Shown: piece by piece, positions 1 through 15,314 of the stretch
Layout: the number at the start of each line of letters is the position of its first letter
Position numbering within the stretch: position 1 is the stretch's first letter
Notes under the pieces: generated by a model
The model's input: only the letters and a program-made list of their open reading frames with translations
Databases searched by the model: none
What the model was told of the DNA's origin: nothing
NCBI RefSeq assembly: GCF_000007005.1
Contig: NC_002754.1
Length of the DNA stretch: 64,000 nucleotides
From: Saccharolobus solfataricus P2
Lineage (GTDB): Archaea > Thermoproteota > Thermoprotei_A > Sulfolobales > Sulfolobaceae
Strand: one strand, 5' to 3'
Program-made: the position numbers and the translations under genes

Positions 1-252
1 GTATACTCTTCTTCCCTATACATTGTCGCAGCAAGCTTAGTTTCTTTAGCCTCTCTGCTTTCATTATTACTTATAATCTTAATAGCAAGGAGACATATGA
101 TAGAGTATTTCTATATGATTCCTTCGTTCGTTTATATGAACTTTATTGTCGCACTAAACTTCACTGCAATATTTTTAGAGTTAATAAGAGCACCTAGAGT
201 GTGGGTAAAAACTGAAAGAAGTGCCAAGGTTACGGGGGAGGTCATGGGATGA
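1..252 (+). CDS. C-terminal part of a membrane protein, probably a family 2 glycosyltransferase (5' truncated by window)
   Basis: Frame 1 is open from base 1 (VYSSSLYIVAASLVSL...PRVWVKTERSAKVTGEVMG*). It has hydrophobic helices and a W-x-K-T-x-R tail typical of GT2 membrane domains. The stop overlaps the next start (ATGA). Confidence 0.55.
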   Translation, partial: VYSSSLYIVAASLVSLASLLSLLLIILIARRHMIEYFYMIPSFVYMNFIVALNFTAIFLELIRAPRVWVKTERSAKVTGEVMG

Positions 253-857
253 TAACTGAATTTTTACTTAAAAAGAAATTAGAAGAACATTTAAGCCATG
301 TAAAGGAAGAGAATACGATATATGTAACAGATTTAGTAAGATGCCCCAGAAGAGTAAGATATGAGAGTGAATACAAGGAGCTTGCAATCTCTCAGGTTTA
401 CGCGCCTTCAGCTATTTTAGGGGACATATTGCATCTCGGTCTTGAAAGCGTATTAAAAGGGAACTTTAATGCAGAAACTGAAGTTGAAACTCTGAGAGAA
501 ATTAACGTCGGAGGTAAAGTTTATAAAATTAAAGGAAGAGCCGATGCAATAATTAGAAATGACAACGGGAAGAGTATTGTAATTGAGATAAAAACTTCTA
601 GAAGTGATAAAGGATTACCTCTAATTCATCATAAAATGCAGCTACAGATATATTTATGGTTATTTAGTGCAGAAAAAGGTATACTAGTTTACATAACTCC
701 AGATAGGATAGCTGAGTATGAAATAAACGAACCTTTAGATGAAGCAACAATAGTAAGACTTGCAGAGGATACAATAATGTTACAAAACTCACCTAGATTC
801 AACTGGGAATGTAAATATTGCATATTTTCCGTCATTTGCCCAGCTAAACTAACCTAA
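249..857 (+). CDS. cas4: Solo Cas4-family 5'-3' exonuclease with 4Fe-4S cluster (SSO0001-like)
   Basis: One N-terminal Cys (VRCPR) plus C-terminal W-E-C-x-x-C-x5-C-P; RecB motifs GRAD, IEIK and QLQIY. Confidence 0.92.
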   Translation: MITEFLLKKKLEEHLSHVKEENTIYVTDLVRCPRRVRYESEYKELAISQVYAPSAILGDILHLGLESVLKGNFNAETEVETLREINVGGKVYKIKGRADAIIRNDNGKSIVIEIKTSRSDKGLPLIHHKMQLQIYLWLFSAEKGILVYITPDRIAEYEINEPLDEATIVRLAEDTIMLQNSPRFNWECKYCIFSVICPAKLT

Positions 858-888
858 AATTAAAATCTCTCATCGATATAATTAAATT

Positions 889-2091
889 GTGCACACTAGA
901 CCAGTAGTTGCCACAATAGCTGGGAGTGACAGTGGAGGAGGTGCTGGATTACAGGCTGATCTAAAGACGTTTAGCGCATTAGGAGTTTTTGGTACAACAA
1001 TAATAACCGGTTTAACAGCACAGAATACAAGAACAGTTACAAAAGTATTAGAGATACCATTAGATTTCATTGAAGCTCAGTTTGATGCGGTTTGCCTAGA
1101 TTTACATCCAACTCACGCCAAAACTGGAATGTTAGCTTCTGGTAAAGTGGTAGAACTTGTACTGAGAAAAATTAGAGAGTATAACATAAAACTAGTTTTA
1201 GATCCAGTGATGGTTGCGAAATCTGGATCATTATTGGTAACAGAGGATATCTCGGAGCAAATAAAAAAGGCGATGAAGGAGGCCATAATATCTACTCCAA
1301 ACAGATATGAAGCTGAGATAATAAATAAGACAAAGATTAATAGTCAAGATGATGTTATAAAAGCGGCAAGGGAAATTTATTCTAAGTATGGGAATGTTGT
1401 AGTTAAAGGATTTAATGGAGTAGATTACGCCATAATTGACGGAGAAGAAATAGAGTTAAAAGGTGATTACATCAGTACTAAAAATACACATGGTAGTGGA
1501 GACGTATTTTCTGCCTCCATAACTGCATATCTTGCCTTGGGATACAAACTTAAAGATGCATTAATAAGAGCTAAAAAATTCGCTACAATGACAGTCAAAT
1601 ACGGTTTGGACTTAGGAGGAGGATATGGACCAGTAGATCCCTTTGCCCCTATAGAGTCCATAGTGAAGAGAGAAGAAGGAAGAAATCAGCTAGAAAACTT
1701 ACTTTGGTACTTAGAGTCTAATCTTAACGTTATACTTAAACTAATTAACGATACCTCGAAAGTAAATGTGGCATATATGACAAAGTATAATGATGTATTA
1801 AGTTTAGCTGGAGGATTAATAAAATATTTGGACAAGCTGAAGATTGATGGACCGATACTTAATAATGTAAATAACGAGATAACTAGAATCATGAGAGAAA
1901 CACCAGATGAGAAAATAGGAATATTATTGCCATTTACTGATAAAATATTAGACGCTGCGGAAAAAGGTAAAATAAAATTAAATAAAAGTGGTATTAATGG
2001 GGACGCAATACTACGAGATAATATGGTATTAATTATAGCCAAGGATAAGGATGAGTTAATAAGAAAGTTAAAAGAGGTAGCTATAGGTTGA
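889..2091 (+). CDS. thiD: Hydroxymethylpyrimidine/phosphomethylpyrimidine kinase with degenerate C-terminal ThiN-like domain
   Basis: [29 protein letters not shown] and THGSGD motifs. Confidence 0.92.
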
Positions 2092-2969
2092 TAATCGTAG
2101 TAGGAAGTTACAACGTTGATGTAATATTGAAAGTTAATAAAATACCTGAAATTGGAGAAACTGTAATAGCTGATGAATTATACATAACGCATGGAGGTAA
2201 AGGCTCAAATCAGGCAGTATCAGCTTCAAGATTAGGAAGCCATGTTAAAATAATCGTTGCAGTGGGAGATGATAAACATGGAACTGATGCGATCGAATTT
2301 TGGAAATCAGAAAATATTGACGTATCTAAAGTGAAAGTAAAGAGTGGTATAAACACTGGAACTGCATATATATTCGTTGACAAGAAAGGAAGAAATATCA
2401 TTGTTGTAAACAGAGGTGCAAATTACTATTTGTCAGAAGACGATTTAAATAATAGCCTCGAGGGTGACATATTATTAATGCAATTGGAAATAAGGGAAAG
2501 TGTAGTTAAAAAGGCAGCAAAGGAGTTTAACGGAATAAAAATACTTAATCCCGCCCCAGCTAACCTTAAAGATACTGAAATTTTGTCATTAGTAGATATT
2601 ATAACACCTAATGAAATAGAGTTCAAAGAGTTAGTAAATACTGACGATTTCGAATATGGTTTAAATCTATTGCTAAAGAAAGTAAAAAAGGCGGTGATAG
2701 TTACGCTAGGGGAAAGAGGAGCACTTCTGGCAACTAGAGACGGAAAAAAGGTACTTATACCAGCTCCTAAAGTAAATGTTATCGATGAAACGGGAGCTGG
2801 TGACGTATTTAATGCAGCGCTTTCCGTGTATTTAGAAAAGGGGTATGACCTTGAGACTGCAGTTGAATATGCGAATAAGGTTGCAGCGCTTTCCGTAACT
2901 AAGATAGGAGCTTTAGGACCAAAATTAGATGAGGTGGTGAGATTTCTTGAAGAAATCGACAAAGCGTAA
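2088..2969 (+). CDS. rbsK: Ribokinase (PfkB family)
   Basis: GGKGSNQAV, NPAPA, TPNEIE and DETGAGDVF signatures. Confidence 0.85.
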   Translation: MIIVVGSYNVDVILKVNKIPEIGETVIADELYITHGGKGSNQAVSASRLGSHVKIIVAVGDDKHGTDAIEFWKSENIDVSKVKVKSGINTGTAYIFVDKKGRNIIVVNRGANYYLSEDDLNNSLEGDILLMQLEIRESVVKKAAKEFNGIKILNPAPANLKDTEILSLVDIITPNEIEFKELVNTDDFEYGLNLLLKKVKKAVIVTLGERGALLATRDGKKVLIPAPKVNVIDETGAGDVFNAALSVYLEKGYDLETAVEYANKVAALSVTKIGALGPKLDEVVRFLEEIDKA

Positions 2970-2970
2970 A

Positions 2971-3060
2971 ATGAAAAGTGATAGAAAAGAAGAGGAACAT
3001 TGCATAGCAGGATTTTGTGATCTAGATTTTGTAGATATAACGGAGCGAGAGGATCTATGA
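2971..3060 (+). CDS. Candidate 29-aa microprotein MKSDRKEEEHCIAGFCDLDFVDITEREDL
   Basis: ATG lies 1 nt after the rbsK stop and the TGA overlaps the next ATG (ATGA), so the ORF fills the whole gap. Confidence 0.45.
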   Translation: MKSDRKEEEHCIAGFCDLDFVDITEREDL

Positions 3061-3743
3061 AAATTACCTTTATTGGAACTGGAGCTGGTTCTAGTCTAGG
3101 GCTAAAAAGGGTTAAGTCCAGTATATTAATTAACGATAAAGTACTTCTTGACTTAGGTCCTGGGGCTGAGTTAAGATTAGAAGATCTAAGAATACATCCG
3201 AAAGCTCTCTTTATTACTCATTTGCATATTGATCATTTCAGTGGAGTTTTTGACTATTTAGTCCAGAGGAAAATAAGACAAATCCCCGAATTAGTAATCT
3301 ATTCTCCCAAAGGCTTTTCAGAAGTCCTAAACATATACACTAGAATAGGAAATAATATTTCGGCTAAAATATATGAAAGCGACTTACCCAGCGGTAAAAT
3401 TGACGAAATGGAAATATATTCGATTCAAGCTTGTCACTCGATTTATGCCGTTAGCTACATTATAAGCGATGGAAATACGAGAGTATTATATACTGGTGAT
3501 ACTAAAGAACCTTGTAATGCTATACTAGAAAACATAAAAGATGTTGATTTGATCATTCATGAAACAACTTGTGTAGATGACTGTAGTATTTGGGGACATA
3601 CTTCAATAAAACAAATATTTGAGTTATTTAGCAATAAGAGAATTTTTGCTACACACATTCCGGCCGAAATTGAAGAAAAAATAATAAGCCTTGCTAATAA
3701 TAAAATAAATATTGCTTTTGACGGGTTGTCATTAAATGTGTAG
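3057..3743 (+). CDS. Metallo-beta-lactamase-fold hydrolase (RNase Z/PhnP-like)
   Basis: FIGTG, THLHIDH, YTGDT and IHETT..GHT motifs. Confidence 0.82.
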   Translation: MKITFIGTGAGSSLGLKRVKSSILINDKVLLDLGPGAELRLEDLRIHPKALFITHLHIDHFSGVFDYLVQRKIRQIPELVIYSPKGFSEVLNIYTRIGNNISAKIYESDLPSGKIDEMEIYSIQACHSIYAVSYIISDGNTRVLYTGDTKEPCNAILENIKDVDLIIHETTCVDDCSIWGHTSIKQIFELFSNKRIFATHIPAEIEEKIISLANNKINIAFDGLSLNV

Positions 3744-4458
3744 AATTTTGGCTTTTCATACTAAGGGCGAAATTTCAAAAGAATACGTAAATGCATTAAT
3801 AAGGGCAAGTAGAAATGATATTTTCTCTAAATATGGAAGTCATCCAGATGGATGGGGTCTAAGTATATTTCTCAAGAGAAATGATAAATGGAAGGTAATT
3901 TATTATAGATCAGAAGATCCAATATATGAGGATCCTAACATCAGTTATCTAATTGATATTGCCAAGGGAGAGGACATAGTTGGAGTTATTCATGCAAGAA
4001 AAGCCGGTAGGAAATTTCTTACCGGACTATCTCACGCTCATCCCTATTACATGCGAGCAAACATCTATGATCTCTACTTTGCTCATAATGGTTCAGTTAG
4101 TAGAACAAGCTTTAAAGATAGCAATAGACCATTCACAGATAGCTATCTAATTCTAGAAGAGATTAAGACTTTAATAGAGAGTAATATGTCTCCATTTGAC
4201 GCGTATGCAATAACTCTAGATAAACTGAAGGACTGTTCTACGAGCTTAAATTCAAGTTTGATTTATTACAATAAGAAGGAAGGACCCTCTATTCTAATTG
4301 GATATTATTATAATAGGAATAGATTATCAAAAGAGACTAATGAAGAGTATTACAAGCTATATACAGACAATAAAAGATACATCTTTTCATCAACAATAAA
4401 ATATTATCTAGGAGTAGATGCAGAGGAACTTATAATGGGAAGTATTATACATCTTTAA
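3736..4458 (+). CDS. Class II glutamine amidotransferase (YafJ/EgtC-like)
   Basis: N-terminal MCR (Ntn Cys), HPDGWG, HARKA, HPY, AHNG and TDS. Confidence 0.82.
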   Translation: MCRILAFHTKGEISKEYVNALIRASRNDIFSKYGSHPDGWGLSIFLKRNDKWKVIYYRSEDPIYEDPNISYLIDIAKGEDIVGVIHARKAGRKFLTGLSHAHPYYMRANIYDLYFAHNGSVSRTSFKDSNRPFTDSYLILEEIKTLIESNMSPFDAYAITLDKLKDCSTSLNSSLIYYNKKEGPSILIGYYYNRNRLSKETNEEYYKLYTDNKRYIFSSTIKYYLGVDAEELIMGSIIHL

Positions 4459-4499
4459 GAGGTATAAATTCTTAAGCATGAAGATTATAATATTTATTT

Positions 4500-5348
4500 A
4501 TGAAGGAGAGTCTCATAGAAGCAAAAGTTATGGATTATGGTAAACTAAAGGACATTCAAAAGGAAATTTTATATTACAAGCTCTATGTTGACGCATTGAA
4601 AAAGAAAGGGATTAAGGAAAAAGTGGACCCACCCCCTACCTTGCCCAAATCTATTGTATCTTCAGTGCTCACTGGAGGAATCCCTAGAGATGGCCCACTA
4701 CAGATAGAATTAGTTAGTAATGATGTAGTAAAGATAAAGGAGTATAACACTTTAGTAAAAATACAGAGTGATTCTAGGCTACCGTTATATGCCATAGTAG
4801 AGTACAGGGATACTGATATAAGGGTTTATTTAGCTTATCGAGAGAATCCTAGCATAGTTGGATTAGACCTAGGCTTACGGCATCTAATAACAATTGTTGC
4901 AATAAAAGATACCAAACCATGGAAAGTGAGATTCTTTGATGAGCCTAAACTTATGGAGAAATTTGCAAATTTCTTAAGTGAAAATCAAGGAATTATTAAG
5001 TTAGAAGAAATGAAGAGTAACGCTAAAAGAATTATTTACGAAGCTGTAAGCTTTATTGAAGATTTAGAACCAAAAGTAGTTGCGATGGAGAATTTGGAAT
5101 ATTTTGAGACCAAAACGGGTAAAGGATTAAGAGCTTTACAGAATATGCTAGAGAACGAAATACGAAGAAGAGGTATTAGATATAGAAAAATAGACCCATA
5201 TAACACATCAAGGGTATGTGCAAAGTGTGGATACAAGAAAGGTGAAATATTAGGCTCGCTATTTGTATGTCCAGCATGTGGATATAAAGCGGATAGAGAT
5301 TATAACGCAGCATATAATATAGCACTAAAATGTTATTACACTTGCTAA
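4500..5348 (+). CDS. tnpB: Compact TnpB-like (IS200/IS605 OrfB) RuvC + zinc-ribbon protein, 282 aa
   Basis: RuvC-I GLDLG, RuvC-II AMENL, YNTSRVCAKCG...CPACG zinc finger and RuvC-III DRDYNAAYNI. Confidence 0.87.
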   Translation: MKESLIEAKVMDYGKLKDIQKEILYYKLYVDALKKKGIKEKVDPPPTLPKSIVSSVLTGGIPRDGPLQIELVSNDVVKIKEYNTLVKIQSDSRLPLYAIVEYRDTDIRVYLAYRENPSIVGLDLGLRHLITIVAIKDTKPWKVRFFDEPKLMEKFANFLSENQGIIKLEEMKSNAKRIIYEAVSFIEDLEPKVVAMENLEYFETKTGKGLRALQNMLENEIRRRGIRYRKIDPYNTSRVCAKCGYKKGEILGSLFVCPACGYKADRDYNAAYNIALKCYYTC

Positions 5349-5350
5349 TA

Positions 5351-6334
5351 CTAAATACTCCAATAATTCCTCAAAATATTCTTCTCTTCACTCAGATAAT
5401 TCATAAATCTGGATCTCACCGAATCGTTTGACTGATATTTTTTATACTCCATTTTTATGTTTGCAAATCCTTCTAAAAACGCCTTTAAACCTTTTATTAA
5501 ACCTTTATCGTAGCCCCCCTCTAAAACTGCATACTTTTTAGTGAATTTATTACTGAGTACTCCAAAACTATAGAATGTGTATTCAGTAGCGTTCACTGAT
5601 GCTAGACCGTCGCCCATGTAAGAGTCAAATCCAGCAGAATAAGCGATAACTGCTGGTTTGAAGTCATCTAAAATTGCCTGGATAATTGGAATTAATTCCT
5701 CATATAAATCGTCACTACCTAAAGGAGGAATTAGTAAGTTAATCTTCGTCCCTTCTGCATCTTTCTCGCCTATCATATCTGGGAAACCGTTTCCAGGATA
5801 GATAGTTCTAGGATCTTGATGCACATCAATATGCAAAATATCTGGATCATCATAAAAAATCTCTTGAGTGCCATTGCCGTAATGCACATCAAAATCAATA
5901 ATTGCAACTCTCTTTAGCTTGTACTTCTTAATGGGATATGCTACATTATTAAAAATGCAAAAACCTAGGGTAGGAGCACCAAACGCTCTACCGTTAACTC
6001 CAGCGTGATGACCAGGTGGCCTAACTAATGCAAAACCATTAGTCTCAAATGCCTCTAATGCACCACCCATTGCATAAAGTGCGGACTCATAGGTGTACCT
6101 ATTAGTATAAGTATCTTCGTCTAAGTTCTCTTCTAATTTGGAGTGTTTTTCAACTAATTTAACGTAATCTTCCGAATGTATTATTTGTGGATCATCAACT
6201 TTAATAGGTTTTTTGAACTTAACCTTAAGTTGATTAATTGCAGATAATGCCTTGTCTATTCTACTGGGATTCTCAACGTGATACCCCTTTGGAGCATGAT
6301 ACTTGTATATATCATCATAAACAATAGTTATCAT
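5351..6334 (-). CDS. Histone deacetylase/AcuC family hydrolase
   Basis: RPPGHHA, GFCIFNN, IDFDVHYGNGTQ, SAGFD and LEGGY. Confidence 0.92.
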   Translation of the reverse strand: MITIVYDDIYKYHAPKGYHVENPSRIDKALSAINQLKVKFKKPIKVDDPQIIHSEDYVKLVEKHSKLEENLDEDTYTNRYTYESALYAMGGALEAFETNGFALVRPPGHHAGVNGRAFGAPTLGFCIFNNVAYPIKKYKLKRVAIIDFDVHYGNGTQEIFYDDPDILHIDVHQDPRTIYPGNGFPDMIGEKDAEGTKINLLIPPLGSDDLYEELIPIIQAILDDFKPAVIAYSAGFDSYMGDGLASVNATEYTFYSFGVLSNKFTKKYAVLEGGYDKGLIKGLKAFLEGFANIKMEYKKYQSNDSVRSRFMNYLSEEKNILRNYWSI

Positions 6335-6375
6335 TTAGCCTATCTTTTTATAACACGTCTATTTAAGTTTAAAAC

Positions 6376-7431
6376 ATGAATCGAATACAGAGAGTACAAA
6401 AAGAATTGGAGAGAGCTAATGCAGATTACTTAATAACTGGCACTACTAGCAATATGTACTATTTAATAGGATTTTCTGAGGAACAAATGGAAAGGCCACT
6501 TTTACTTTTCATTACCAGAGACGATTATTTTCTACTTGTACCAAAACTTTATGAGGAGCAATTAAAGCAATTTCCGCTTATCGTCTACAGAGACGGAGAG
6601 GATCCTTACTCCAAGCTAAATTTGAAGGAAAATTCTAATGTTTTAATTGACGATACAACCTTCTCGCTATTTACTATAGAAATACTAAATAGATTCAAAC
6701 CTGGAAGAATAGGCAGAGCCTCACGTATATTGGGAAAGCTTAGACAAGTAAAGGATGATGAGGAATTAGAAAAAATGGAGAAAGGTGTTAAGAAAGCGGA
6801 ACAACTTATTTTAGAATTTGTATCGAACATAAAGGAAAATATGACAGAGTGCCAAATAGAGAGAAAATTAAAGAGTTTCTTGATCGAAGAGGCGGGTAAT
6901 ATATCGTTTGATCCAATAGTAACCTCCGGTCCTAACTCTTCTATGCCTCACTTAAGATGTAGTGATAAAAAGGTAAAACGAGGTGAGGCAATAGTTATAG
7001 ATTATGGGATAAAGCATGATGGCTACTCTACTGACACCACAAGAGTGTTCTCCTTAGGTAAACCTAATGATCCTTTAATTTTAGAAATTGTCGAAATTGT
7101 TAAAACTGCGAATGAAGAGGCTGAAAAGCATGTAAGAGAAGGTATGAGAGCAAAGGAAATTGACTATTTTGCTAGAGAAGTCATAACTAATAAAGGGTAT
7201 GGGGACTATTTTATTCACAGAACTGGACATGGTATAGGAATCGACGTTCATGAAGATCCATATATTTCGCCGGATAACGATGATGTAATAGAGCAAAATA
7301 TGGTGTTTACTATAGAGCCTGGAATTTATCTACCAGGCAAATTTGGGATAAGGATAGAAGACGAAGTAGTAGTAAAAAAAGGTTATGGGAAAACACTAAA
7401 CATGTTACAAAAAGAATTATACATTATATAA
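6376..7431 (+). CDS. pepQ: Xaa-Pro aminopeptidase/prolidase (M24B)
   Basis: IDYG...YSTDTTR, HRTGHGIG..VHE, EPGIY and GIRIED. Confidence 0.9.
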   Translation: MNRIQRVQKELERANADYLITGTTSNMYYLIGFSEEQMERPLLLFITRDDYFLLVPKLYEEQLKQFPLIVYRDGEDPYSKLNLKENSNVLIDDTTFSLFTIEILNRFKPGRIGRASRILGKLRQVKDDEELEKMEKGVKKAEQLILEFVSNIKENMTECQIERKLKSFLIEEAGNISFDPIVTSGPNSSMPHLRCSDKKVKRGEAIVIDYGIKHDGYSTDTTRVFSLGKPNDPLILEIVEIVKTANEEAEKHVREGMRAKEIDYFAREVITNKGYGDYFIHRTGHGIGIDVHEDPYISPDNDDVIEQNMVFTIEPGIYLPGKFGIRIEDEVVVKKGYGKTLNMLQKELYII

Positions 7432-7554
7432 TTTCGGCCATAATTTTTTAATTTCAGAATTTCTCTTCAAATGGTAATATTACATCTATGGTCGTTCTTA
7501 GTACTATAAAGAACGGAAGAAGGAAAACACTTAAAAGCATTTAGATATATCTTT

Positions 7555-10479
7555 TTGAAGGTGATTTCGGTGAAAAAGAGTTTGATAATATTACTTTTTG
7601 TAATATTATCTCCTATAACATATTTAACATTACCACTATCCTCACAATCCACTCCTATTCAAGGATATGCGACAAGTAGTGAGTTGATAACACCCGGCGA
7701 AATTGAGGTACCAATAACCTTTCATTTGATTAACTTAGGTCAAACCTTAACTGAGGTTACAATAACCCCTGCAGATACTTATCCGTTTTACCTTTACCCC
7801 TATAATAATGGAACTGAACTTACACACATACCCTTGTGGAATCAAGGACAGACAGTAAATGTTACTTACTTGTTTGATATAGCTAGTACTGCTAAGACTG
7901 GTACATATACTGATGTAGTTGTAGTTCAAGGTATCACTACCTCTGGTACCCAAGTAACTTATGATGTTTTAGTACCAGTAGTAATAGCTGGCTATGTTAA
8001 TTTCTCCGCATCATCAGTATGGGGAACAACATCAAACCCAATGGTAGTAGGACCAGGAGAAAACAACATCCCACTAACAATAATACTACAAAACTTAGGT
8101 AATTCGTTAGTCACCAATATAACATTAGAACTAAACTCACAGTTTCCAGTTGGATTCCTACAAAATAACGCTACAATTTCCGCAATACCAGCAGGATATT
8201 ATGGAGAGGTAACTGTAATGACTTCAGTATATCCTAATGCAACTGAAGGTTTGTATTACATCAAGCTAAATGTAATATACTATCATAATGCGACTACTAC
8301 AGTATTAGTACCTATTGATATAGGATCATCTAATCAAGTGTCACTAGAGGACGCATGGGGTACACCATCAGACCCGATGGTAGCTGCGCCTGGTGAAACT
8401 TTACTTCCCCTCACTATTTACGTAAAGAATCTTGGCGAGAACCTACTATCCAATGTCATGTTAATATTGCAATCTCACTATCCAATTCAATTCCTCCAAA
8501 ATTACACAATGATAGGTTTCGTACCAGCTGGAGGTTATAATTACGTTACAGTAGTAGCAAACGTCTATAAGAACGTAACACCTGGAGTATATTACGTACC
8601 AATAACCTTAGTGGCATACGATGGAGGGTTCATGCAGACTTTTGAAATGCCAGTCTACGTTTTAGGCTATGTTAATTTCTCCGCATCATCAGTATGGGGA
8701 ACAACATCAAACCCAATGGTAGTAGGACCAGGAGAAAACAACATCCCACTAACAATAATACTACAAAACTCTGGGATAGTTACTGTAACTAACGCAACCT
8801 TGTTCCTACAATCACAGTATCCGGTACAGTTTCTACAGAACAATGTAACCCTTGGGAACGTCCCAGCCGGCTATCCTATACCAGTAACAGTACTAGCAAA
8901 CGTTTATCCTAACGTAACAAATACCGGTGTTTACTACATAACCGCAAAAGTGATGTATTACGATGGTGTGATACAATATGTAAAGGTCCCAATATATATA
9001 GAGTCACTAAATCAAGTTTCGGTAGAGGGTATATGGGGTTCTTTATCTAATCCAATACTGGTAGCTCCGGGTGAGAACAATGTACCACTAACGCTAGTGA
9101 TAAAGAATCTTGGTGAAAACCTACTATCAAACGTAAGCCTAATATTGCAATCTCATTATCCGATACAATTCCTCCAGCAAAACGCCTCCGTTGGTTTCGT
9201 TCCCGCTGGTAGCTACAATTACGTAACAGTGACGGCCAACGTGTTTCCAAATGCAACTCCAGGAGTATACTACATACCAGCAACCCTAGTGGCTTATGGT
9301 GGATTTAAGGAAAACATAATGATAACTGTTGATATCCTAGGATATGTTACAATACAAGCTCAAAGCTTGTGGGGAGAAGTAACATCCCCAATAACGGTCT
9401 CCTCAGGTGAGACTGATGTACCTTTAACGGTTTTACTCAAAAACACTGGTGACGTTAATATTCTTAATGCTACCCTAGTTTTCCAGAACGTAGAGTATCC
9501 ATTAATCTTCCATCAGGCCACTGCACAAATCGGTATTGTACCAGCTGGTCAAGAGAATTATGCAACAGTTACTGTAAGTGTGTTTCCAAATGCAACTCCA
9601 GGAGTATACTACATACCAGCAACTCTATATTACTTCAATCATCAAACCACAATAACAGTTCCAATAACAATTTATTCACCTAATATTTCAGTAAATTTAG
9701 TAACTATTCCACCTCAAGTATTTCCTAGCTATTATGATGTTAGATTATTGGTAATTTTAACAAACTTTGGAGGTGGTATAGCGGAAAACGCTAACGTGAG
9801 CATTCAATCACCATTCCAAGTTATATCTTCTAATCCACTACACTTAGGAGCACTACCAGTGGGAGTCCCCATCAATGCCACATTTCTTATTAATGTTCCA
9901 AATAATACAGTGCCTAAAATCTACATTGTAAACATTACTATTAACTATGATGGTGGAAAAGAAACGTATCAATATCCATTACAGATATATCCCAAGGCTA
10001 ATCTGATAGTAGTAGGAGTTTCTTATCCTTCACTAAGTGCAGGAGACAGCAACGTGCCAATTACAATAACTCTTAAAAACGCTGGAAATTCGACAGCTAA
10101 GAACGTTATAGTTAGGCTAGGAACTTCCAATCTAATATATCCTCATGTGAGTTCATCAAACCCATTGCAAGCATTAACAGCATCTGAGGTATTCGCTGGA
10201 GATATTGCACCCGGACAAGCAATAAATGTAACTTTTGTAGTCGATGTAAGTGGTGGAGCGTCTGCTGGAACTTACCCATTAGCAATTGCTTTGATATGGA
10301 ATCAAACTGGTGCACTATTTCCATTTGAGCAGTCTGATACATTCTACGTAACAATATCTCCTCCATTCTATGAACAGTTCTTTAAATCACCTATTGGCAT
10401 AATAACAATTATAGTAATAATAGTTATAATTATAGTGATTGCTGCCGTACTCCTAAGAGTAAGAAATAAAAGAAGATAA
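7555..10479 (+). CDS. Large cell-surface glycoprotein with tandem ~113-aa Ig-like repeats (COG1361/S-layer-domain type)
   Basis: N-terminal signal peptide; repeats of W-G-x-x-S-x-P...PGE-x-N-x-P-L-T-I...N; many N-x-S/T sequons; C-terminal TM helix with an RVRNKRR tail. Confidence 0.8.
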   Translation: MKVISVKKSLIILLFVILSPITYLTLPLSSQSTPIQGYATSSELITPGEIEVPITFHLINLGQTLTEVTITPADTYPFYLYPYNNGTELTHIPLWNQGQTVNVTYLFDIASTAKTGTYTDVVVVQGITTSGTQVTYDVLVPVVIAGYVNFSASSVWGTTSNPMVVGPGENNIPLTIILQNLGNSLVTNITLELNSQFPVGFLQNNATISAIPAGYYGEVTVMTSVYPNATEGLYYIKLNVIYYHNATTTVLVPIDIGSSNQVSLEDAWGTPSDPMVAAPGETLLPLTIYVKNLGENLLSNVMLILQSHYPIQFLQNYTMIGFVPAGGYNYVTVVANVYKNVTPGVYYVPITLVAYDGGFMQTFEMPVYVLGYVNFSASSVWGTTSNPMVVGPGENNIPLTIILQNSGIVTVTNATLFLQSQYPVQFLQNNVTLGNVPAGYPIPVTVLANVYPNVTNTGVYYITAKVMYYDGVIQYVKVPIYIESLNQVSVEGIWGSLSNPILVAPGENNVPLTLVIKNLGENLLSNVSLILQSHYPIQFLQQNASVGFVPAGSYNYVTVTANVFPNATPGVYYIPATLVAYGGFKENIMITVDILGYVTIQAQSLWGEVTSPITVSSGETDVPLTVLLKNTGDVNILNATLVFQNVEYPLIFHQATAQIGIVPAGQENYATVTVSVFPNATPGVYYIPATLYYFNHQTTITVPITIYSPNISVNLVTIPPQVFPSYYDVRLLVILTNFGGGIAENANVSIQSPFQVISSNPLHLGALPVGVPINATFLINVPNNTVPKIYIVNITINYDGGKETYQYPLQIYPKANLIVVGVSYPSLSAGDSNVPITITLKNAGNSTAKNVIVRLGTSNLIYPHVSSSNPLQALTASEVFAGDIAPGQAINVTFVVDVSGGASAGTYPLAIALIWNQTGALFPFEQSDTFYVTISPPFYEQFFKSPIGIITIIVIIVIIIVIAAVLLRVRNKRR
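7990..8770 (+). repeat. 106-bp identical direct repeat, copies at 7990-8095 and 8665-8770
   Basis: GGCTATGTTAATTTCTCCGCATCATCAG...ATACTACAAAACT occurs twice, 675 bp (225 codons) apart. Confidence 0.9.
9241..9623 (+). repeat. 44-bp identical direct repeat, copies at 9241-9284 and 9580-9623
   Basis: GTGTTTCCAAATGCAACTCCAGGAGTATACTACATACCAGCAAC occurs twice, 339 bp (113 codons) apart. Confidence 0.88.
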
Positions 10480-11142
10480 AAATATCTTTAAAATTATGAT
10501 AAGAGCTTTTCTACTTTTAACATTGTTTTTTAGACCAATTTATTCGGAGTTAGCCTTAGTCCTCTCTTTAATACTCATACTATTAATACTTCTTCTTTCT
10601 TCTTTATCCTTATTAATAAAAATCTTAAGGCTACTGAAAAATATATATTAAACTAGAAACTAAAGAAAACATGTTAGGGTAAAATCTGTAATTTAATGAT
10701 GCTGTTAATTTTACATAGGTTGAAAATAATGAAGTTAAATGGTTTATCGTTAGAATACGATAGAGCATTTGACTTAACAAGACTTTGAATGTAAGTTAGA
10801 AGATCTTTTAATAACTGCTTTGTGGACTTGTTAATTTTCGCATAGGGTTAAGAGGTCTTGCAAACATAAACTGTACATATGATCACTAATTGAAACAAAG
10901 ATAATAGTAAGCTTAATGAAAAATATCCAACATATCAATTAAGCGTTTAACAATCATTTCTTTATGTAGAAGAAGTGGATTTTCTTTAGATCTAGCATTG
11001 ATATATATTATCGTTATACATAATATAGAATTTTTAATTAAAAATTAAAAATATAAAAATATAATTATCATAAACCTATAATATATGCAAGCTTGCGATA
11101 GCTTAGAGGAAAAATTATAAGTTTCTAAGAGTTTCTCTGAAA

Positions 11143-11760
11143 ATGTATATGATCCTAGAATTACTTAACATAATTGGTATAATTGCATTTACAATTTCTG
11201 GTTCTCTTAAGGGAACTAATAAGGGACTAGATATTTTTGGTGTTGTAACTCTAGGTGTAATAACTAGTTATGCCGGAGGTATAATTGCAGATATCTTACT
11301 GGGCATATATCCACCACAGATACTAAAGGAATTGAATTACCTACTACTAAGTGTAGGTATTTCCATTTTCGTCTTTTACTTCTATAAATGGTTACAGACT
11401 AATCCTATAAAGATGATAATTGCGATAAGTGATGCAGTAGGACTTTCAACTTTTGCTACATTAGGTGCATCATTAGCTTACTCTTATGGGTTAAATCCAA
11501 TATCAGTTGGATTAATTGCGGCTATTGTTGGCACTGGTGGAGGTGTGATAAGAGATGTTCTTGTAAACGAAATTCCTATGGTACTTACAAAGGAAATATA
11601 TGCTACTGCAGCCCTTCTTAGTGGATTTATATACTATTTCACTACTCCTTATTTACATCATGATAGTTTATTTGTAGCTTTTCTGGGTTCATTTTTATTG
11701 AGAATACTTTCAATAAAATACAATTTTAATTTACCTAAAAGGGAAGACAACAAAAGCTAA
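11143..11760 (+). CDS. Trimeric intracellular cation (TRIC) channel family protein (UPF0126)
   Basis: Duplicated halves: AFTISG...DIFG...AGGIIAD and SDAVGL...GGGVIRDVL..EIP; seven hydrophobic segments. Confidence 0.87.
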   Translation: MYMILELLNIIGIIAFTISGSLKGTNKGLDIFGVVTLGVITSYAGGIIADILLGIYPPQILKELNYLLLSVGISIFVFYFYKWLQTNPIKMIIAISDAVGLSTFATLGASLAYSYGLNPISVGLIAAIVGTGGGVIRDVLVNEIPMVLTKEIYATAALLSGFIYYFTTPYLHHDSLFVAFLGSFLLRILSIKYNFNLPKREDNKS

Positions 11761-11766
11761 TCCTTG

Positions 11767-11946
11767 CTATCTCTTTATATAGTAGAAATATCTCCCTCTT
11801 CTGCCTACCTTATTTTCCTTAATAAGTTGGGACAACGCATTGTAAACTTCTGGGGCAGGGTACGGTATATATTTCAATAAGTCATTAAATGTTATCCACT
11901 CCCTATCCTTTATTATTTTTTCTACAGACTGTTTAACATCTTCCAT
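11767..11946 (-). CDS. 59-aa winged-helix nucleic-acid-binding protein (missed by ORF track)
   Basis: Translated by hand: MEDVKQSVEKIIKDREWITFNDLLKYIPYPAPEVYNALSQLIKENKVGRRGRYFYYIKR*. Three helices plus a basic/aromatic wing hairpin. Confidence 0.72.
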   Translation of the reverse strand: MEDVKQSVEKIIKDREWITFNDLLKYIPYPAPEVYNALSQLIKENKVGRRGRYFYYIKR

Positions 11947-12049
11947 ATATATTATAATATAACTAAATGTAAAATAAGTTTGTGTTAAAAAGGTTTGTAG
12001 ATGTGTTATAAGATAATTTTATATTTATGGTCAATCTTTTACCACTGCA

Positions 12050-12673
12050 TTGTTATTATACTTTAAGCCTACCAAAAAAGAAAGAGATATAAACGTTGCT
12101 TTGGAAATTGTATCTGAGTTATTCGCTTCGAGAATTGGTAAACTAATGGGTTTGCCTATTCTAGAAGTGTCTTTAATAAAACATGGGGATGAAATAGGAT
12201 TATTAATGGATTATTTACCGGATAAAGCTACAGAGCAGAATATATATAATTTAGATGAAATCAAGATGAGTTTAGCATTTGAAGAATGGATTCTAAACAT
12301 AGATTTAAAAGAGGATCATGTACTATCAAAGAACGGAAAGGGATTCATCATTGATCATGGACATTCATTGTCTGCTTGGAAACCATTATACTATATAATA
12401 CAAATCATAGATAAAAAGGTAAGTAGATTTAATTTGTGGGCTAGTGAGGATGATTTTAGAGATGGAATAGAACTGTTATCGTCAATAGATCATAATACTA
12501 TATCTGAAATTCTTAAGGAAAGCTTCTCCGAGGTAGTTGAGAGTAATTTCTGCAAATTATTTACTAGGGAAGTTGCTGCCGAGTACATGGACTTGAATAT
12601 TAAGATTTTGGAAAAAAGAATGAAATATCTGAAAGATGGTAAGATTTTATTTACCTATAATTATAGGCAATAG
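12050..12673 (+). CDS. HipA-like / PI3-4K-like atypical kinase, possibly N-terminally eroded
   Basis: YFK, E-x-x-A-x-x-I-G-K-L-M-G-L-P, EWILNIDLK and IIDHGHSL motifs. Confidence 0.65.
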   Translation: MLLYFKPTKKERDINVALEIVSELFASRIGKLMGLPILEVSLIKHGDEIGLLMDYLPDKATEQNIYNLDEIKMSLAFEEWILNIDLKEDHVLSKNGKGFIIDHGHSLSAWKPLYYIIQIIDKKVSRFNLWASEDDFRDGIELLSSIDHNTISEILKESFSEVVESNFCKLFTREVAAEYMDLNIKILEKRMKYLKDGKILFTYNYRQ

Positions 12674-13030
12674 AAATATAGCAAACATTAGATTAAAAAA
12701 TACAATTATAGTTATTATTGTATATAGCTTATTTCTCTCTGACGCAAACTGCGCAATCCCTAATAACACTCTAAGTACGGGGGTAGCTATTAGAACCATT
12801 AAGCCTAAGTATATATAATCTAAACCGTATAGCTTAGGCAGTCCACTAAATATTTCAGAGGGTTTGAAAATTGAACTATTAACAATTGAATTTGAACTTG
12901 ATATCTGAGTGATAGTAAAGCCGTTTGAACCATTATTCACAAATAGTAGAGCAACTCCGAAAATTATTATTATTGCACTAATTATTACGCCTATTCTTAA
13001 CGTATTACCTATAATATTGTTAAAGTCCAT
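12647..13030 (-). CDS. DUF1634-type membrane protein
   Basis: Three TM segments with G-L-x-x-L-I-A-T-P-V-L-R-V; directly follows the TauE gene, the usual arrangement for this family. Confidence 0.7.
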   Translation of the reverse strand: MDFNNIIGNTLRIGVIISAIIIIFGVALLFVNNGSNGFTITQISSSNSIVNSSIFKPSEIFSGLPKLYGLDYIYLGLMVLIATPVLRVLLGIAQFASERNKLYTIITIIVFFNLMFAIFLLPIIIGK

Positions 13031-13880
13031 ATCCGAACCCCCTTAGTATCATTTGAATTCCTAGAAAGATGAGAATTGCAGTAAAAATGTACCTTATAGT
13101 TTTATTTGTAACTCTAACTAATATTTTAGTCCCAACAAACGCACCAATTAAAACACCCAATGCAGTACCTGCTGCCAAAAATGGCTGTATGTATCCGAAT
13201 ATCCAGTAAATTGAGCTCCCAGTTGCAGCTGTCACGCCAATCATGAAGTTACTAGTAGTAGTACTAACTTTCATCGGTAAGTTCATAGCCCAATCCATAC
13301 CTAAAACCTTGAGCGCACCGGAACCTATTCCCAACAAACCAGAGATGAAACCAGCAAAGAACATAATTATTTCACCTAACCACCATCTAACACCATGATA
13401 TTCAACCTCTTGTTTTAGGACTGTATCGTAATATTTCCCATAGAGCTCAAAAACTCTAGTTGTCCAATCTGGCTTAATGGGTTTAGGAAGTTCAAATTTA
13501 GACTTAGCAAGTTGTACATAAACCTGGGAAAGTAAGACAATTCCAAAGACAATGTATACTATAAATTCCAAGTGATGAGCGTAAATATAGGCCACTGTTA
13601 AGGCTCCAGCTATAGAGCCTGTTGTAGTAGCTATTTCAAGTCCCATTCCTATTTTGACGTTAGTTATTCTATCCTTAACGTAAGCACTTGCTGCACCACT
13701 AGAGGTTGCTATGGTTGAGATTAGACTAGCTCCAGAAGCATAGGCAATAGGCACATTTAGATATAATGTATAAATTGGTACTAAAAACGTGGCTCCACCT
13801 AAACCGGTTAAAGCGCCTAGTATACCTGAAAGAGCACTTATTAGCACAACTGTAACAAAAAATTCTATTGGCGTCAACAT
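13020..13880 (-). CDS. Sulfite exporter TauE/SafE (TSUP) family permease
   Basis: GALTGLGGATFLVP and GFISGLLGIGSG repeats, STTTSNFMIG. Confidence 0.87.
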   Translation of the reverse strand: MLTPIEFFVTVVLISALSGILGALTGLGGATFLVPIYTLYLNVPIAYASGASLISTIATSSGAASAYVKDRITNVKIGMGLEIATTTGSIAGALTVAYIYAHHLEFIVYIVFGIVLLSQVYVQLAKSKFELPKPIKPDWTTRVFELYGKYYDTVLKQEVEYHGVRWWLGEIIMFFAGFISGLLGIGSGALKVLGMDWAMNLPMKVSTTTSNFMIGVTAATGSSIYWIFGYIQPFLAAGTALGVLIGAFVGTKILVRVTNKTIRYIFTAILIFLGIQMILRGFGYGL

Positions 13881-13919
13881 AAAATATACTACTAACTAAA
13901 TGGTTATTAAAGTATTCTA

Positions 13920-15314
13920 TCACTCTTCATCATATTCAACTGGATCTTTAAGTCCATTGATCCTAAACGCCATCTTCCTCATATAACAAGGCCCACATTT
14001 CCCACAATGTTTTTGCCCACCTTCATAACAGCTCCAGGTCAAATGTAGTGGGGCACCAATTTCGTATCCCAGCTTTACTATTTCGTGCTTTACTAAATTA
14101 CCAACTGGCATTAATATCTCAATTCTCTTGTTTGGACCAGTTGCATATGGGCTTAACTTATTTAACATCCTTATGAATTCCATCTCGTTATCTGGATAAG
14201 CTCCAGCTTCCTCTAAATTTATTCCAGATGCTATGGCATCATATCCATAGGCTTCGGCAATTGCTAATGAAACAGAGAAGAAAATTAGATTTCTTGCAGG
14301 AACCCATTCATGTGCAAACTCTGCTCCTTCTTCTCCTTTCCTATCCTTAACTATCTCTCCTCCTCCCTTTATTAACGTGGCATGACCTATTATTTTGAAT
14401 AAATCTGTATTTATTTCAAGCAGTGGTATTTGCAAATATTCGGCAATTTTCCTCACGGCCTCTCTTTCCTTTTCCTCAGCCTTATGGTGGTAATTAAAGT
14501 GTATTAGAGTAACTTCATGACCTTCTCTTAGAAGTTTAGTTGCTGCTACAGTGGAATCTAACCCACCACTTGCCACAACAAGTACCCTATACTTCTTTCT
14601 TTTTTCCATGATAGGCAACGTAGTTATTAGTTTATTCGAAGTGACCATTACTACCGAATATGGTTCCAATTTAGTTATATTTACTGGGTCGAATGGTTTT
14701 GCATCAAAATATTCGTCAAGAGATGTAAAGAATAGGGACTCCAACGAGTGGTCATAAGCCATGTATAATGGCTTAAAGTTCTGAGCTAGAAATATTCTAT
14801 CAGGGTTTTTCTTATCTCCTATAACCAAAGCAAAACTTCCTTTGATTTGCTCTAATATTCCCTTTAGTGCTTCAAGATTACCGTCCCACGTCTTGTCCAA
14901 AAGTAGTGGAAGAATTGCACTATCTATCTTAGTTTTTCTTTTTAATTCATATTTTTTCTCTAATTCTAAATCATTTGCGATTATTCCATTATGAGTTACA
15001 ATATATCTGTCTCCAATAAAAGGTTGAATGTCGTCCTCAGTTTTCTGTCTAACGTATTCAGTAGTGGGTTCTGCCCTATTATTAGCTATGACAACCCTAG
15101 AGTCTTCATCTAAAATGCCGTATAGTAATTCCTCTTTTTCTGAGGGCTTTCCTATGGATTTTCTTACTTTTACTGTACCATCCTTTTGAATTACAACAAT
15201 ACCAAAACTGTCCCTACCCCTATCTTCTGCCTTTTTGAGGATACTAGCTAATTTCAGCTCAACTTTCTCAAAATTTTTAGGGTTTAATATGAGGACTCCA
15301 GATACACTGCACAC
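13920..15314 (-). CDS. queC: GAT-QueC: class II glutamine amidotransferase fused to 7-cyano-7-deazaguanine synthase (archaeosine pathway)
   Basis: N-terminal MCSVSG...RGRDSFG...HNG GATase; then [18 protein letters not shown] and TWSCY..CGKCGPC QueC motifs. Confidence 0.95.

Follow-up and report, generated by a model that had tools for sequence, protein, structure and literature searches.

Cas12 descends from TnpB, and compact relatives of TnpB are being sought for genome editing. The omegaRNA of a canonical TnpB is encoded over and past the 3' end of the gene. The genome of Saccharolobus solfataricus P2 carries a small TnpB-like gene, here called mini-TnpB, within a stretch of 64,000 nucleotides of NC_002754.1 (hereafter the window, with positions counted from its first base), and the intergenic space around this gene amounts to 41 nt upstream and 2 nt downstream. 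What does such a protein do in its host, and does it still work with a guide RNA? The reading that we favor, and hold to be moderately probable, is that mini-TnpB is an active host RuvC nuclease without a guide RNA encoded in cis, belonging to the published GATase-TnpB clade, which takes its name from the glutamine amidotransferase (GATase)-like gene that precedes it.

Sequence and catalytic residues

The gene encodes 282 amino acids and ends in a TAA stop codon at 5346-5348, with the stop of a convergent deacetylase-family open reading frame (ORF) 2 bp further on. A first-pass annotation of the window, made from the sequence alone, had placed the feature at 4459-5351; the locus was correct, and the gene itself starts at 4500 and ends at 5348, position 4459 being the base directly after the stop of the upstream gene and 5351 the first base of the convergent one. 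The protein contains the RuvC motifs GLDLG (residues 121-125), AMENL (195-199) and DRDYNAA (265-271). The catalytic residue of each motif (D123, E197 and D267) and the four cysteines of the zinc ribbon are invariant in 24 orthologs, as are K263 and R266, and D267 aligns with the ADYNAA motif of CnCas12f1 (PDB 8hr5). A further invariant motif, CYYTC, forms the last residues of the protein and is lost solely in a relocated and divergent copy described below. The length, the three RuvC acidic residues, the four-cysteine zinc finger and the position of the two facing stop codons had thus all been read accurately in the first-pass annotation, which had also seen no N-terminal helix-turn-helix; neither HTH_OrfB nor the OrfB_IS605 N-terminal domain was found in mini-TnpB in our Pfam search.

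The only Pfam match is PF07282 (Cas12f1-like TNB), over residues 212-274 (E 3.3e-20, 72.4 bits with a cut-off of 26.3). The NCBIfam model NF040570 (guided_TnpB) aligns residues 103-276 with its positions 171-388 of 389, at a score of 68.8 bits, which is under the cut-off of 100. Sequence matches to solved structures, CnCas12f1, AsCas12f and ISDra2 TnpB among them, are restricted to the C-terminal half. Judged by its residues, mini-TnpB is a genuine, catalytically intact and compact relative of TnpB.

Distribution, inheritance and selection

A word-indexed protein search returned 33 relatives at E <= 7e-65, comprising 31 full-length proteins (272-282 amino acids) and two fragments, from Saccharolobus, Sulfolobus, Sulfuracidifex, Sulfurisphaera, Acidianus, Metallosphaera, Stygiolobus and related metagenome-assembled genomes (MAGs). 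The lowest identity among them was 43%, and the next matches stood at E ~1e-9. An exhaustive hidden Markov model (HMM) search of 1.84 billion representatives, each standing for a cluster at 50% identity, gave seven clusters at E <= 1e-30, six of 247-285 amino acids and one a C-terminal fragment of 101 amino acids. The next score, 4e-18, belonged to ordinary TnpBs of 360-450 amino acids that matched in the RuvC/TNB half only. Because only seven clusters were recovered before this gap, the mini-TnpB clade is small, isolated and specific to the Sulfolobales.

Exactly one mini-TnpB locus is present in each of 15 Sulfolobales genomes of a species-representative collection, and the gene is single-copy in all of the genera covered. 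Comparison with the S. islandicus ortholog gave dN 0.045, dS 0.488 and dN/dS 0.09, and more distant pairs, for which dS is saturated, gave dN/dS of 0.04-0.15. Pairwise protein distances of mini-TnpB track those of the neighboring GATase-like, metallo-beta-lactamase (MBL)-fold and PfkB genes (Pearson 0.80-0.87), and the mean divergence of mini-TnpB equals that of the GATase-like protein (0.50 and 0.51). Near the gene we found no hairpins or inverted repeats of the kind that mark insertion sequence (IS) ends, a search for inverted and direct repeats giving short matches at chance level; the window holds no tnpA and no second copy of TnpB, and a tandem-repeat search of positions 1-14000 revealed no CRISPR array. 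The single locus, the synteny described below, the dN/dS of 0.09 and the divergence that follows that of the neighbors strongly support, at the level of sequence, the view that mini-TnpB is an old, vertically inherited, single-copy host gene under purifying selection rather than an IS remnant. The domestication proposed in the first-pass annotation, along with its remarks on the missing tnpA and IS ends, therefore stands, and the dispersed, near-identical copies with IS605 ends that it had named as the contrary outcome are not what the genomes contain.

The databases label the gene 'transposase IS605 OrfB', and a short protein that scores under the NCBIfam TnpB cut-off could be taken for a truncated IS200/IS605 remnant decaying in place. 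The conservation data refute this: dN/dS is 0.09, the catalytic residues are invariant, and full-length orthologs, down to 40% identity, occupy this site throughout the order. We give decay in place almost no credence, and an ordinary IS remnant is ruled out by synteny, single copy number and purifying selection.

A regulator that does not cleave, binding DNA or RNA in the manner of TldR or dCas12f and leaving its nuclease unused, has precedent, given that other immobilized TnpBs have become repressors or activators (PMC10705468, PMC13472631). TldR and dCas12f-sigmaE resemble mini-TnpB as immobilized, host-retained TnpB derivatives at fixed loci. However, they have lost their catalytic residues and have an adjacent guide RNA gene, whereas in mini-TnpB the catalytic triad, K263 and R266 show no change anywhere in the order and no guide RNA gene is adjacent (2 nt downstream, no Rfam match). 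We consider a regulatory role of this type very unlikely, and a TldR-like identity is rejected on the conservation and the intact triad.

Two orthologs depart from the common pattern. In Sulfolobales archaeon HS-7 (locus L014, 6001-6816) a divergent ortholog with 38% identity lies in a different neighborhood, has no clear start codon for the first 24 homologous codons and ends in KGYYS in place of CYYTC; its triad and zinc ribbon are retained. In an Aramenus-like MAG (locus L015, 6001-6833) the ortholog is broken into two ORFs (6001-6462 and 6528-6833), which points to a frameshifted pseudogene or else to a misassembly, the MAG being of low coverage.

Predicted structure and comparison with known nucleases

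An AlphaFold2 model built from a 24-sequence alignment has a mean predicted local distance difference test (pLDDT) score of 85.7. Its elements are a strand at residues 3-12, helices at 16-35 and 50-58, strands within 63-114, a RuvC core at 118-231, a zinc ribbon and a last helix at 266-281. The predicted layout assigns residues 3-12 and 63-114 to the wedge (WED) domain, 16-35 and 50-58 to a vestigial recognition (REC) lobe, 118-231 and 266-281 to RuvC, and about 232-265 to TNB. When the model was compared with the PDB using Foldseek, the top matches, over the whole chain, were ternary complexes of Cas12f and TnpB at E 2e-11 to 5e-11 (AsCas12f, 8dzj, 2e-11; ISFba1 TnpB, 8iaz, 5e-11), while bacterial RuvC matched at 4e-4 and over the core only. 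In agreement with this layout, positions 112-270 of the family profile align with residues 184-368 of ISDra2 TnpB. Since the segment before RuvC measures about 111 amino acids in mini-TnpB and about 183 in ISDra2, and since the model places these elements as listed, the protein is predicted to retain an N-terminal WED beta-barrel and to have its REC lobe cut to two helices, or about 50 residues. The short REC/bridge region noted in the first-pass annotation is thus reproduced in the model, and the structure prediction that it had suggested matches Cas12f and TnpB.

Canonical IS200/IS605 TnpB, represented by ISDra2 TnpB (408 amino acids; PDB 8bf8, 8exa), shares the D-E-D triad, the TNB domain and the WED barrel with mini-TnpB. 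In contrast, mini-TnpB is about 126 residues shorter and lacks both the long C-terminal tail and the helical REC lobe of about 100 amino acids that holds the guide-target duplex; it is single-copy, and has no left and right transposon ends (LE/RE), no tnpA and no omegaRNA region, in the sense that no conserved one was found. The best structural matches come from Cas12f/Cas14 of type V-F (PDB 8dzj, 8j12, 7c7l; Foldseek E 2e-11 to 4e-10), with which the RuvC-TNB part is shared. Compared with Cas12f, mini-TnpB is 120-250 residues shorter and is without the REC and N-terminal zinc-finger lobe; no CRISPR array (positions 1-14000) and no set of cas genes lie beside it, the flanking genes are metabolic, and the one Cas4-like gene in the vicinity stands alone.

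Search for a guide RNA in cis

Because so little intergenic space is free, we tested for an RNA that overlaps the coding sequence. Synonymous constraint was measured as the fraction of same-amino-acid pairs with an identical codon, in windows of 15 codons; among 19 orthologs this fraction is flat along the ORF (0.33-0.46), with no constraint and no rise toward the 3' end. RNAalifold gave -0.35 kcal/mol, three pairs and no compensatory changes for the last 170 nt plus 10, and 0 to -0.5 kcal/mol in 120-nt windows over the full codon alignment on both strands. Minimum free energy (MFE) z-scores of single sequences, again for 19 orthologs, had means between -0.95 and +0.15, with no consistently structured position, and an Rfam scan of 2500-8000 at E <= 1 returned no match. 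As a positive control we used 14 loci of mobile Lactobacillus TnpB (mean nucleotide identity 0.77), in which the comparison of alifold energies with shuffled alignments gave z of -5 to -7 or still lower near the stop codon and past it. Five Saccharolobus sequences with identity equal to that of the control gave z of -1.5 to -3.6 in the last 300 nt, a weak signal that, at five sequences, does not amount to evidence. As the five tests were null while the mobile-TnpB control was positive, a conserved cis-encoded omegaRNA is absent at the mini-TnpB locus. The first-pass annotation had correctly seen that there is no intergenic room for a right end or an omegaRNA, with 2 nt downstream; its suggestion of a guide overlapping the gene finds no support in synonymous sites or in conserved structure on either strand.

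These results bear on the possibility that mini-TnpB is still guided by RNA, with the guide supplied in trans or by a fast-evolving transcript that overlaps the gene or its convergent neighbor. Every one of the closest structures belongs to an RNA-guided enzyme; the catalytic triad is conserved, as are the lobes that bind omegaRNA (WED, RuvC and TNB), and the weak genus-level signal in the last 300 nt points in the same direction. On the other hand, neither strand of the ORF shows an overlapping element conserved in sequence or structure, and the REC lobe, which in TnpB and Cas12f holds the guide-target duplex, is only about 50 residues long. A fixed downstream guide is impossible because the downstream neighbor differs between genera, being a deacetylase, an M24 peptidase or a metallophosphoesterase. 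We regard an RNA-guided mini-TnpB as unlikely, yet far from negligible.

Gene neighborhood and promoter

The coordinates of the gene, its motifs and its neighbors are collected in Table 1. In 18 of 20 sequence-distinct loci the same co-directional order is found, namely ThiD, a PfkB kinase, the MBL-fold RNase-Z-like gene, the GATase-like gene and then mini-TnpB; in two divergent genomes (L010 and L014) mini-TnpB lies in unrelated surroundings, apart from the MBL and GATase-like genes. The GATase-like gene ends 41 nt before the start of mini-TnpB, and its family is likewise restricted to the Sulfolobales, a shared distribution that is compatible with a functional link and not specific to one. 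The MBL gene (SSO0006, Saci_0271), a COG1234 paralog, resembles RNase Z models and scores under their cut-offs. Its end overlaps the start of the GATase-like gene by 8 nt, and because this overlap is kept across the order the two genes are probably translationally coupled. On the downstream side the deacetylase gene is found in Saccharolobus, Sulfurisphaera, Stygiolobus and Acidianus-like genomes, an M24 peptidase gene in Metallosphaera and Aramenus, and a metallophosphoesterase gene in S. acidocaldarius (Saci_0268, where mini-TnpB is Saci_0269, both tags being mapped via the neighbors). The linkage is constant on the upstream side only, and the deacetylase is not a fixed partner.

Table 1. 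Features of the mini-TnpB locus, in window coordinates
Feature	Position	Strand	Basis or remark
MBL-fold RNase-Z-like gene	3057..3743	+	PF00753 and PF12706 match
Class-II GATase-like gene (N-terminal nucleophile (Ntn) hydrolase, Cys2), constant upstream neighbor	3736..4458	+	PF13230, 21.7 bits (cut-off 23)
Promoter-like A/T box (TATAAATTCTTAAGC)	4463..4477	+	Centered ~27-30 nt before the ATG; position conserved across genera
mini-TnpB gene	4500..5348	+	ORF, 282 amino acids; domain and model matches
D123 codon, RuvC-I catalytic Asp in GLDLG	4866..4868	+	Invariant, 24 orthologs
E197 codon, RuvC-II catalytic Glu in AMENL	5088..5090	+	Invariant, 24 orthologs
Zinc ribbon C240-x2-C243...C257-x2-C260, TNB domain	5217..5279	+	PF07282; four Cys invariant, 24 orthologs
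D267 codon, RuvC-III catalytic Asp in DRDYNAA	5298..5300	+	Invariant, 24 orthologs
C-terminal CYYTC motif (C278, Y280, C282)	5331..5345	+	Invariant, 24-sequence alignment
Histone-deacetylase-family gene, convergent	5351..6334	-	PF00850, E 2e-62

TATA boxes of Sulfolobus promoters are centered near -26, and leaderless mRNAs are common. When the 60 nt before the ATG were aligned for 19 loci, almost every genus showed an A/T box about 27 nt upstream, reading ATTCTTAAG in the window and TTTAAAT, CTTAAGT or CATAAGT elsewhere. The conservation of this box suggests that mini-TnpB has its own promoter, and its distance from the ATG suggests that the mRNA is probably leaderless or nearly so, as the first-pass annotation had supposed from its TATA-like box. 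A scan for sigma-70 promoters and terminators gave three sites where 5.8 were expected, which is uninformative since the host is an archaeon.

Together with the MBL protein and the GATase-like Ntn hydrolase of the constant upstream pair, mini-TnpB might form a three-gene module and supply its nuclease. The module could serve RNA or nucleotide processing, for instance, and mini-TnpB would act with its partners or on their products. The 8-nt overlap within the pair, its place before mini-TnpB in 18 of the 20 loci and the matching Sulfolobales-restricted distribution of the GATase-like family speak for such a module. However, the whole block of 6 kb from a Cas4-like gene through ThiD and PfkB is syntenic too, so that the adjacency may be plain vertical synteny; mini-TnpB has a conserved promoter-like box of its own, and in L010 and L014 it is found away from both genes. 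We think a three-gene module improbable. The linkage to the GATase-like gene is real, and a functional link is unproven because a larger syntenic block surrounds the pair and mini-TnpB has its own putative promoter.

Other features of these loci are recorded here. The stand-alone Cas4-like PD-(D/E)XK nuclease gene (window 249-857; PF12705, PF01930) has no CRISPR array within 14 kb, and in most genera it keeps its place in the syntenic block described above. Six loci drawn from several lineages (L002:5718-5981, L003:5671-5937, L004:5711-5980, L011:725-988, L012:2140-2409 and L015:5711-5980) contain a conserved ORF of 87-89 amino acids on the same strand between the GATase-like and mini-TnpB genes; the A/T box is also present where this ORF intervenes. 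The window lacks the ORF, as do Saccharolobus, Metallosphaera and S. acidocaldarius. The ORF product has no Pfam or NCBIfam match, a word-based search for homologs gave near-identical proteins only, and its AlphaFold2 model (four strands and two helices, pLDDT 79) has no significant match in the PDB (best E 0.17).

In Saccharolobus caldissimus, and in this species only, an insert of 536 bp (L054:3850-4385) lies between the mini-TnpB stop codon and the deacetylase gene. Within it, a perfect 11-bp hairpin (3937-3965) precedes a GC-rich segment (46-62%) of about 270 nt, which folds strongly (-91 kcal/mol) within an AT-rich genome. The segment matches no Rfam family and no tRNA, is not repeated in any of the other loci and lacks an exact metagenome match; the insert could be a small mobile element or an unrecognized RNA gene. 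Further along the window, at 7555-10479, an ORF of 974 amino acids combines a signal-like N-terminus with a C-terminal transmembrane helix. The protein sequence contains several internal repeats, each about 100-110 amino acids long; no tandem repeats were detected in the DNA. The ORF product is probably a surface protein.

Relation to the published clade

The first-pass annotation had ranked the gene as a candidate for an undescribed system, and in this it was wrong. Altae-Tran et al. (2023, PNAS, PMC10691335) described a "GATase-TnpB" clade in the Sulfolobaceae, with proteins of about 280 amino acids consisting of a wedge and an active RuvC and without room for a downstream RNA; its function was called unclear, and its members were considered uncertain to bind a guide and possibly independent of RNA. 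The clade occupies one paragraph of that paper, without tests, and we found the term in no other paper in the literature searched; a search by locus tags (Saci_0269, SSO0008 and those of the neighbors) gave no result. Mini-TnpB agrees with the clade in its Sulfolobales host, its size, its reduction to a wedge and an intact RuvC, its adjacency to the GATase-like gene, the missing space for a downstream RNA gene and its immobility, and we found no difference. It is a member of this already known clade, and we have rediscovered a described, uncharacterized group. To that description we add the negative tests for an overlapping RNA, the dN/dS values, the MBL gene as a second constant neighbor, the variable downstream neighbor, the conserved promoter-like box, the CYYTC motif and the ORF of about 88 amino acids in some lineages.

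A proposed host nuclease without a guide in cis

The history that we favor begins with a TnpB that parted from its transposon at an early date, ahead of the split between the sampled Sulfolobales genera. The protein shrank to wedge, RuvC and zinc ribbon, with REC down to two helices, and has since then passed by vertical descent as a single-copy host gene, probably with a promoter of its own and a leaderless mRNA. It would have been retained as an active metal-dependent RuvC nuclease and, unlike canonical TnpB, has no conserved omegaRNA encoded in cis at or over its 3' end. More tentatively, mini-TnpB may cut nucleic acid without any guide, its substrate being picked by structure or by a protein partner; we lean toward this RNA independence because the protein has lost its REC lobe, the locus contains no RNA gene and the downstream context varies by genus.

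Several points weigh against a guide-free nuclease. WED, RuvC and TNB, by which TnpB holds the omegaRNA scaffold, are all kept, and RNA binding is compatible with this architecture. The structure tests target conservation across the order, and windows restricted to the five Saccharolobus sequences reach z of -2.3 to -3.6, a weak signal though not a nil one. To our knowledge, no RNA-independent nuclease of the TnpB lineage has been demonstrated experimentally, and the literature searched contains no reports of expression, binding or activity for the mini-TnpB protein. As for its importance to the cell, the transposon-insertion sequencing (Tn-seq) study of S. islandicus by Zhang et al. 2018 (PMC6249222) lists 441 essential genes with arCOG categories, and in this complete list no entry is 'Mobilome'. 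Because the list holds no gene of this category, mini-TnpB would seem to be non-essential in rich medium, provided that it is classed as 'Mobilome' like other 'IS605 OrfB' genes.

Implications

The domesticated TnpBs that we know of, TldR and dCas12f-sigmaE, are nuclease-dead. The GATase-TnpB clade differs in being a domesticated TnpB found across an order, with the nuclease residues kept and with REC and the cis guide lost. As the clade has already been published, our contribution is a sharper, testable statement about it and not its discovery, and the function can be tested with ease in genetically tractable hosts. If the protein were a functional programmable nuclease with a trans-encoded or otherwise non-canonical guide, an outcome that we think possible though not likely, it would be the smallest natural RNA-guided nuclease of the TnpB/Cas12 lineage, serving a function of the Sulfolobales core genome, and would set the lower size limit of a thermostable RNA-guided nuclease at about 280 amino acids. 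If it is guide-free, it would be the first descendant of TnpB shown to be a guide-free, structure-specific nuclease, and it would imply that an RNA-guided scaffold is able to revert to an ordinary host nuclease.

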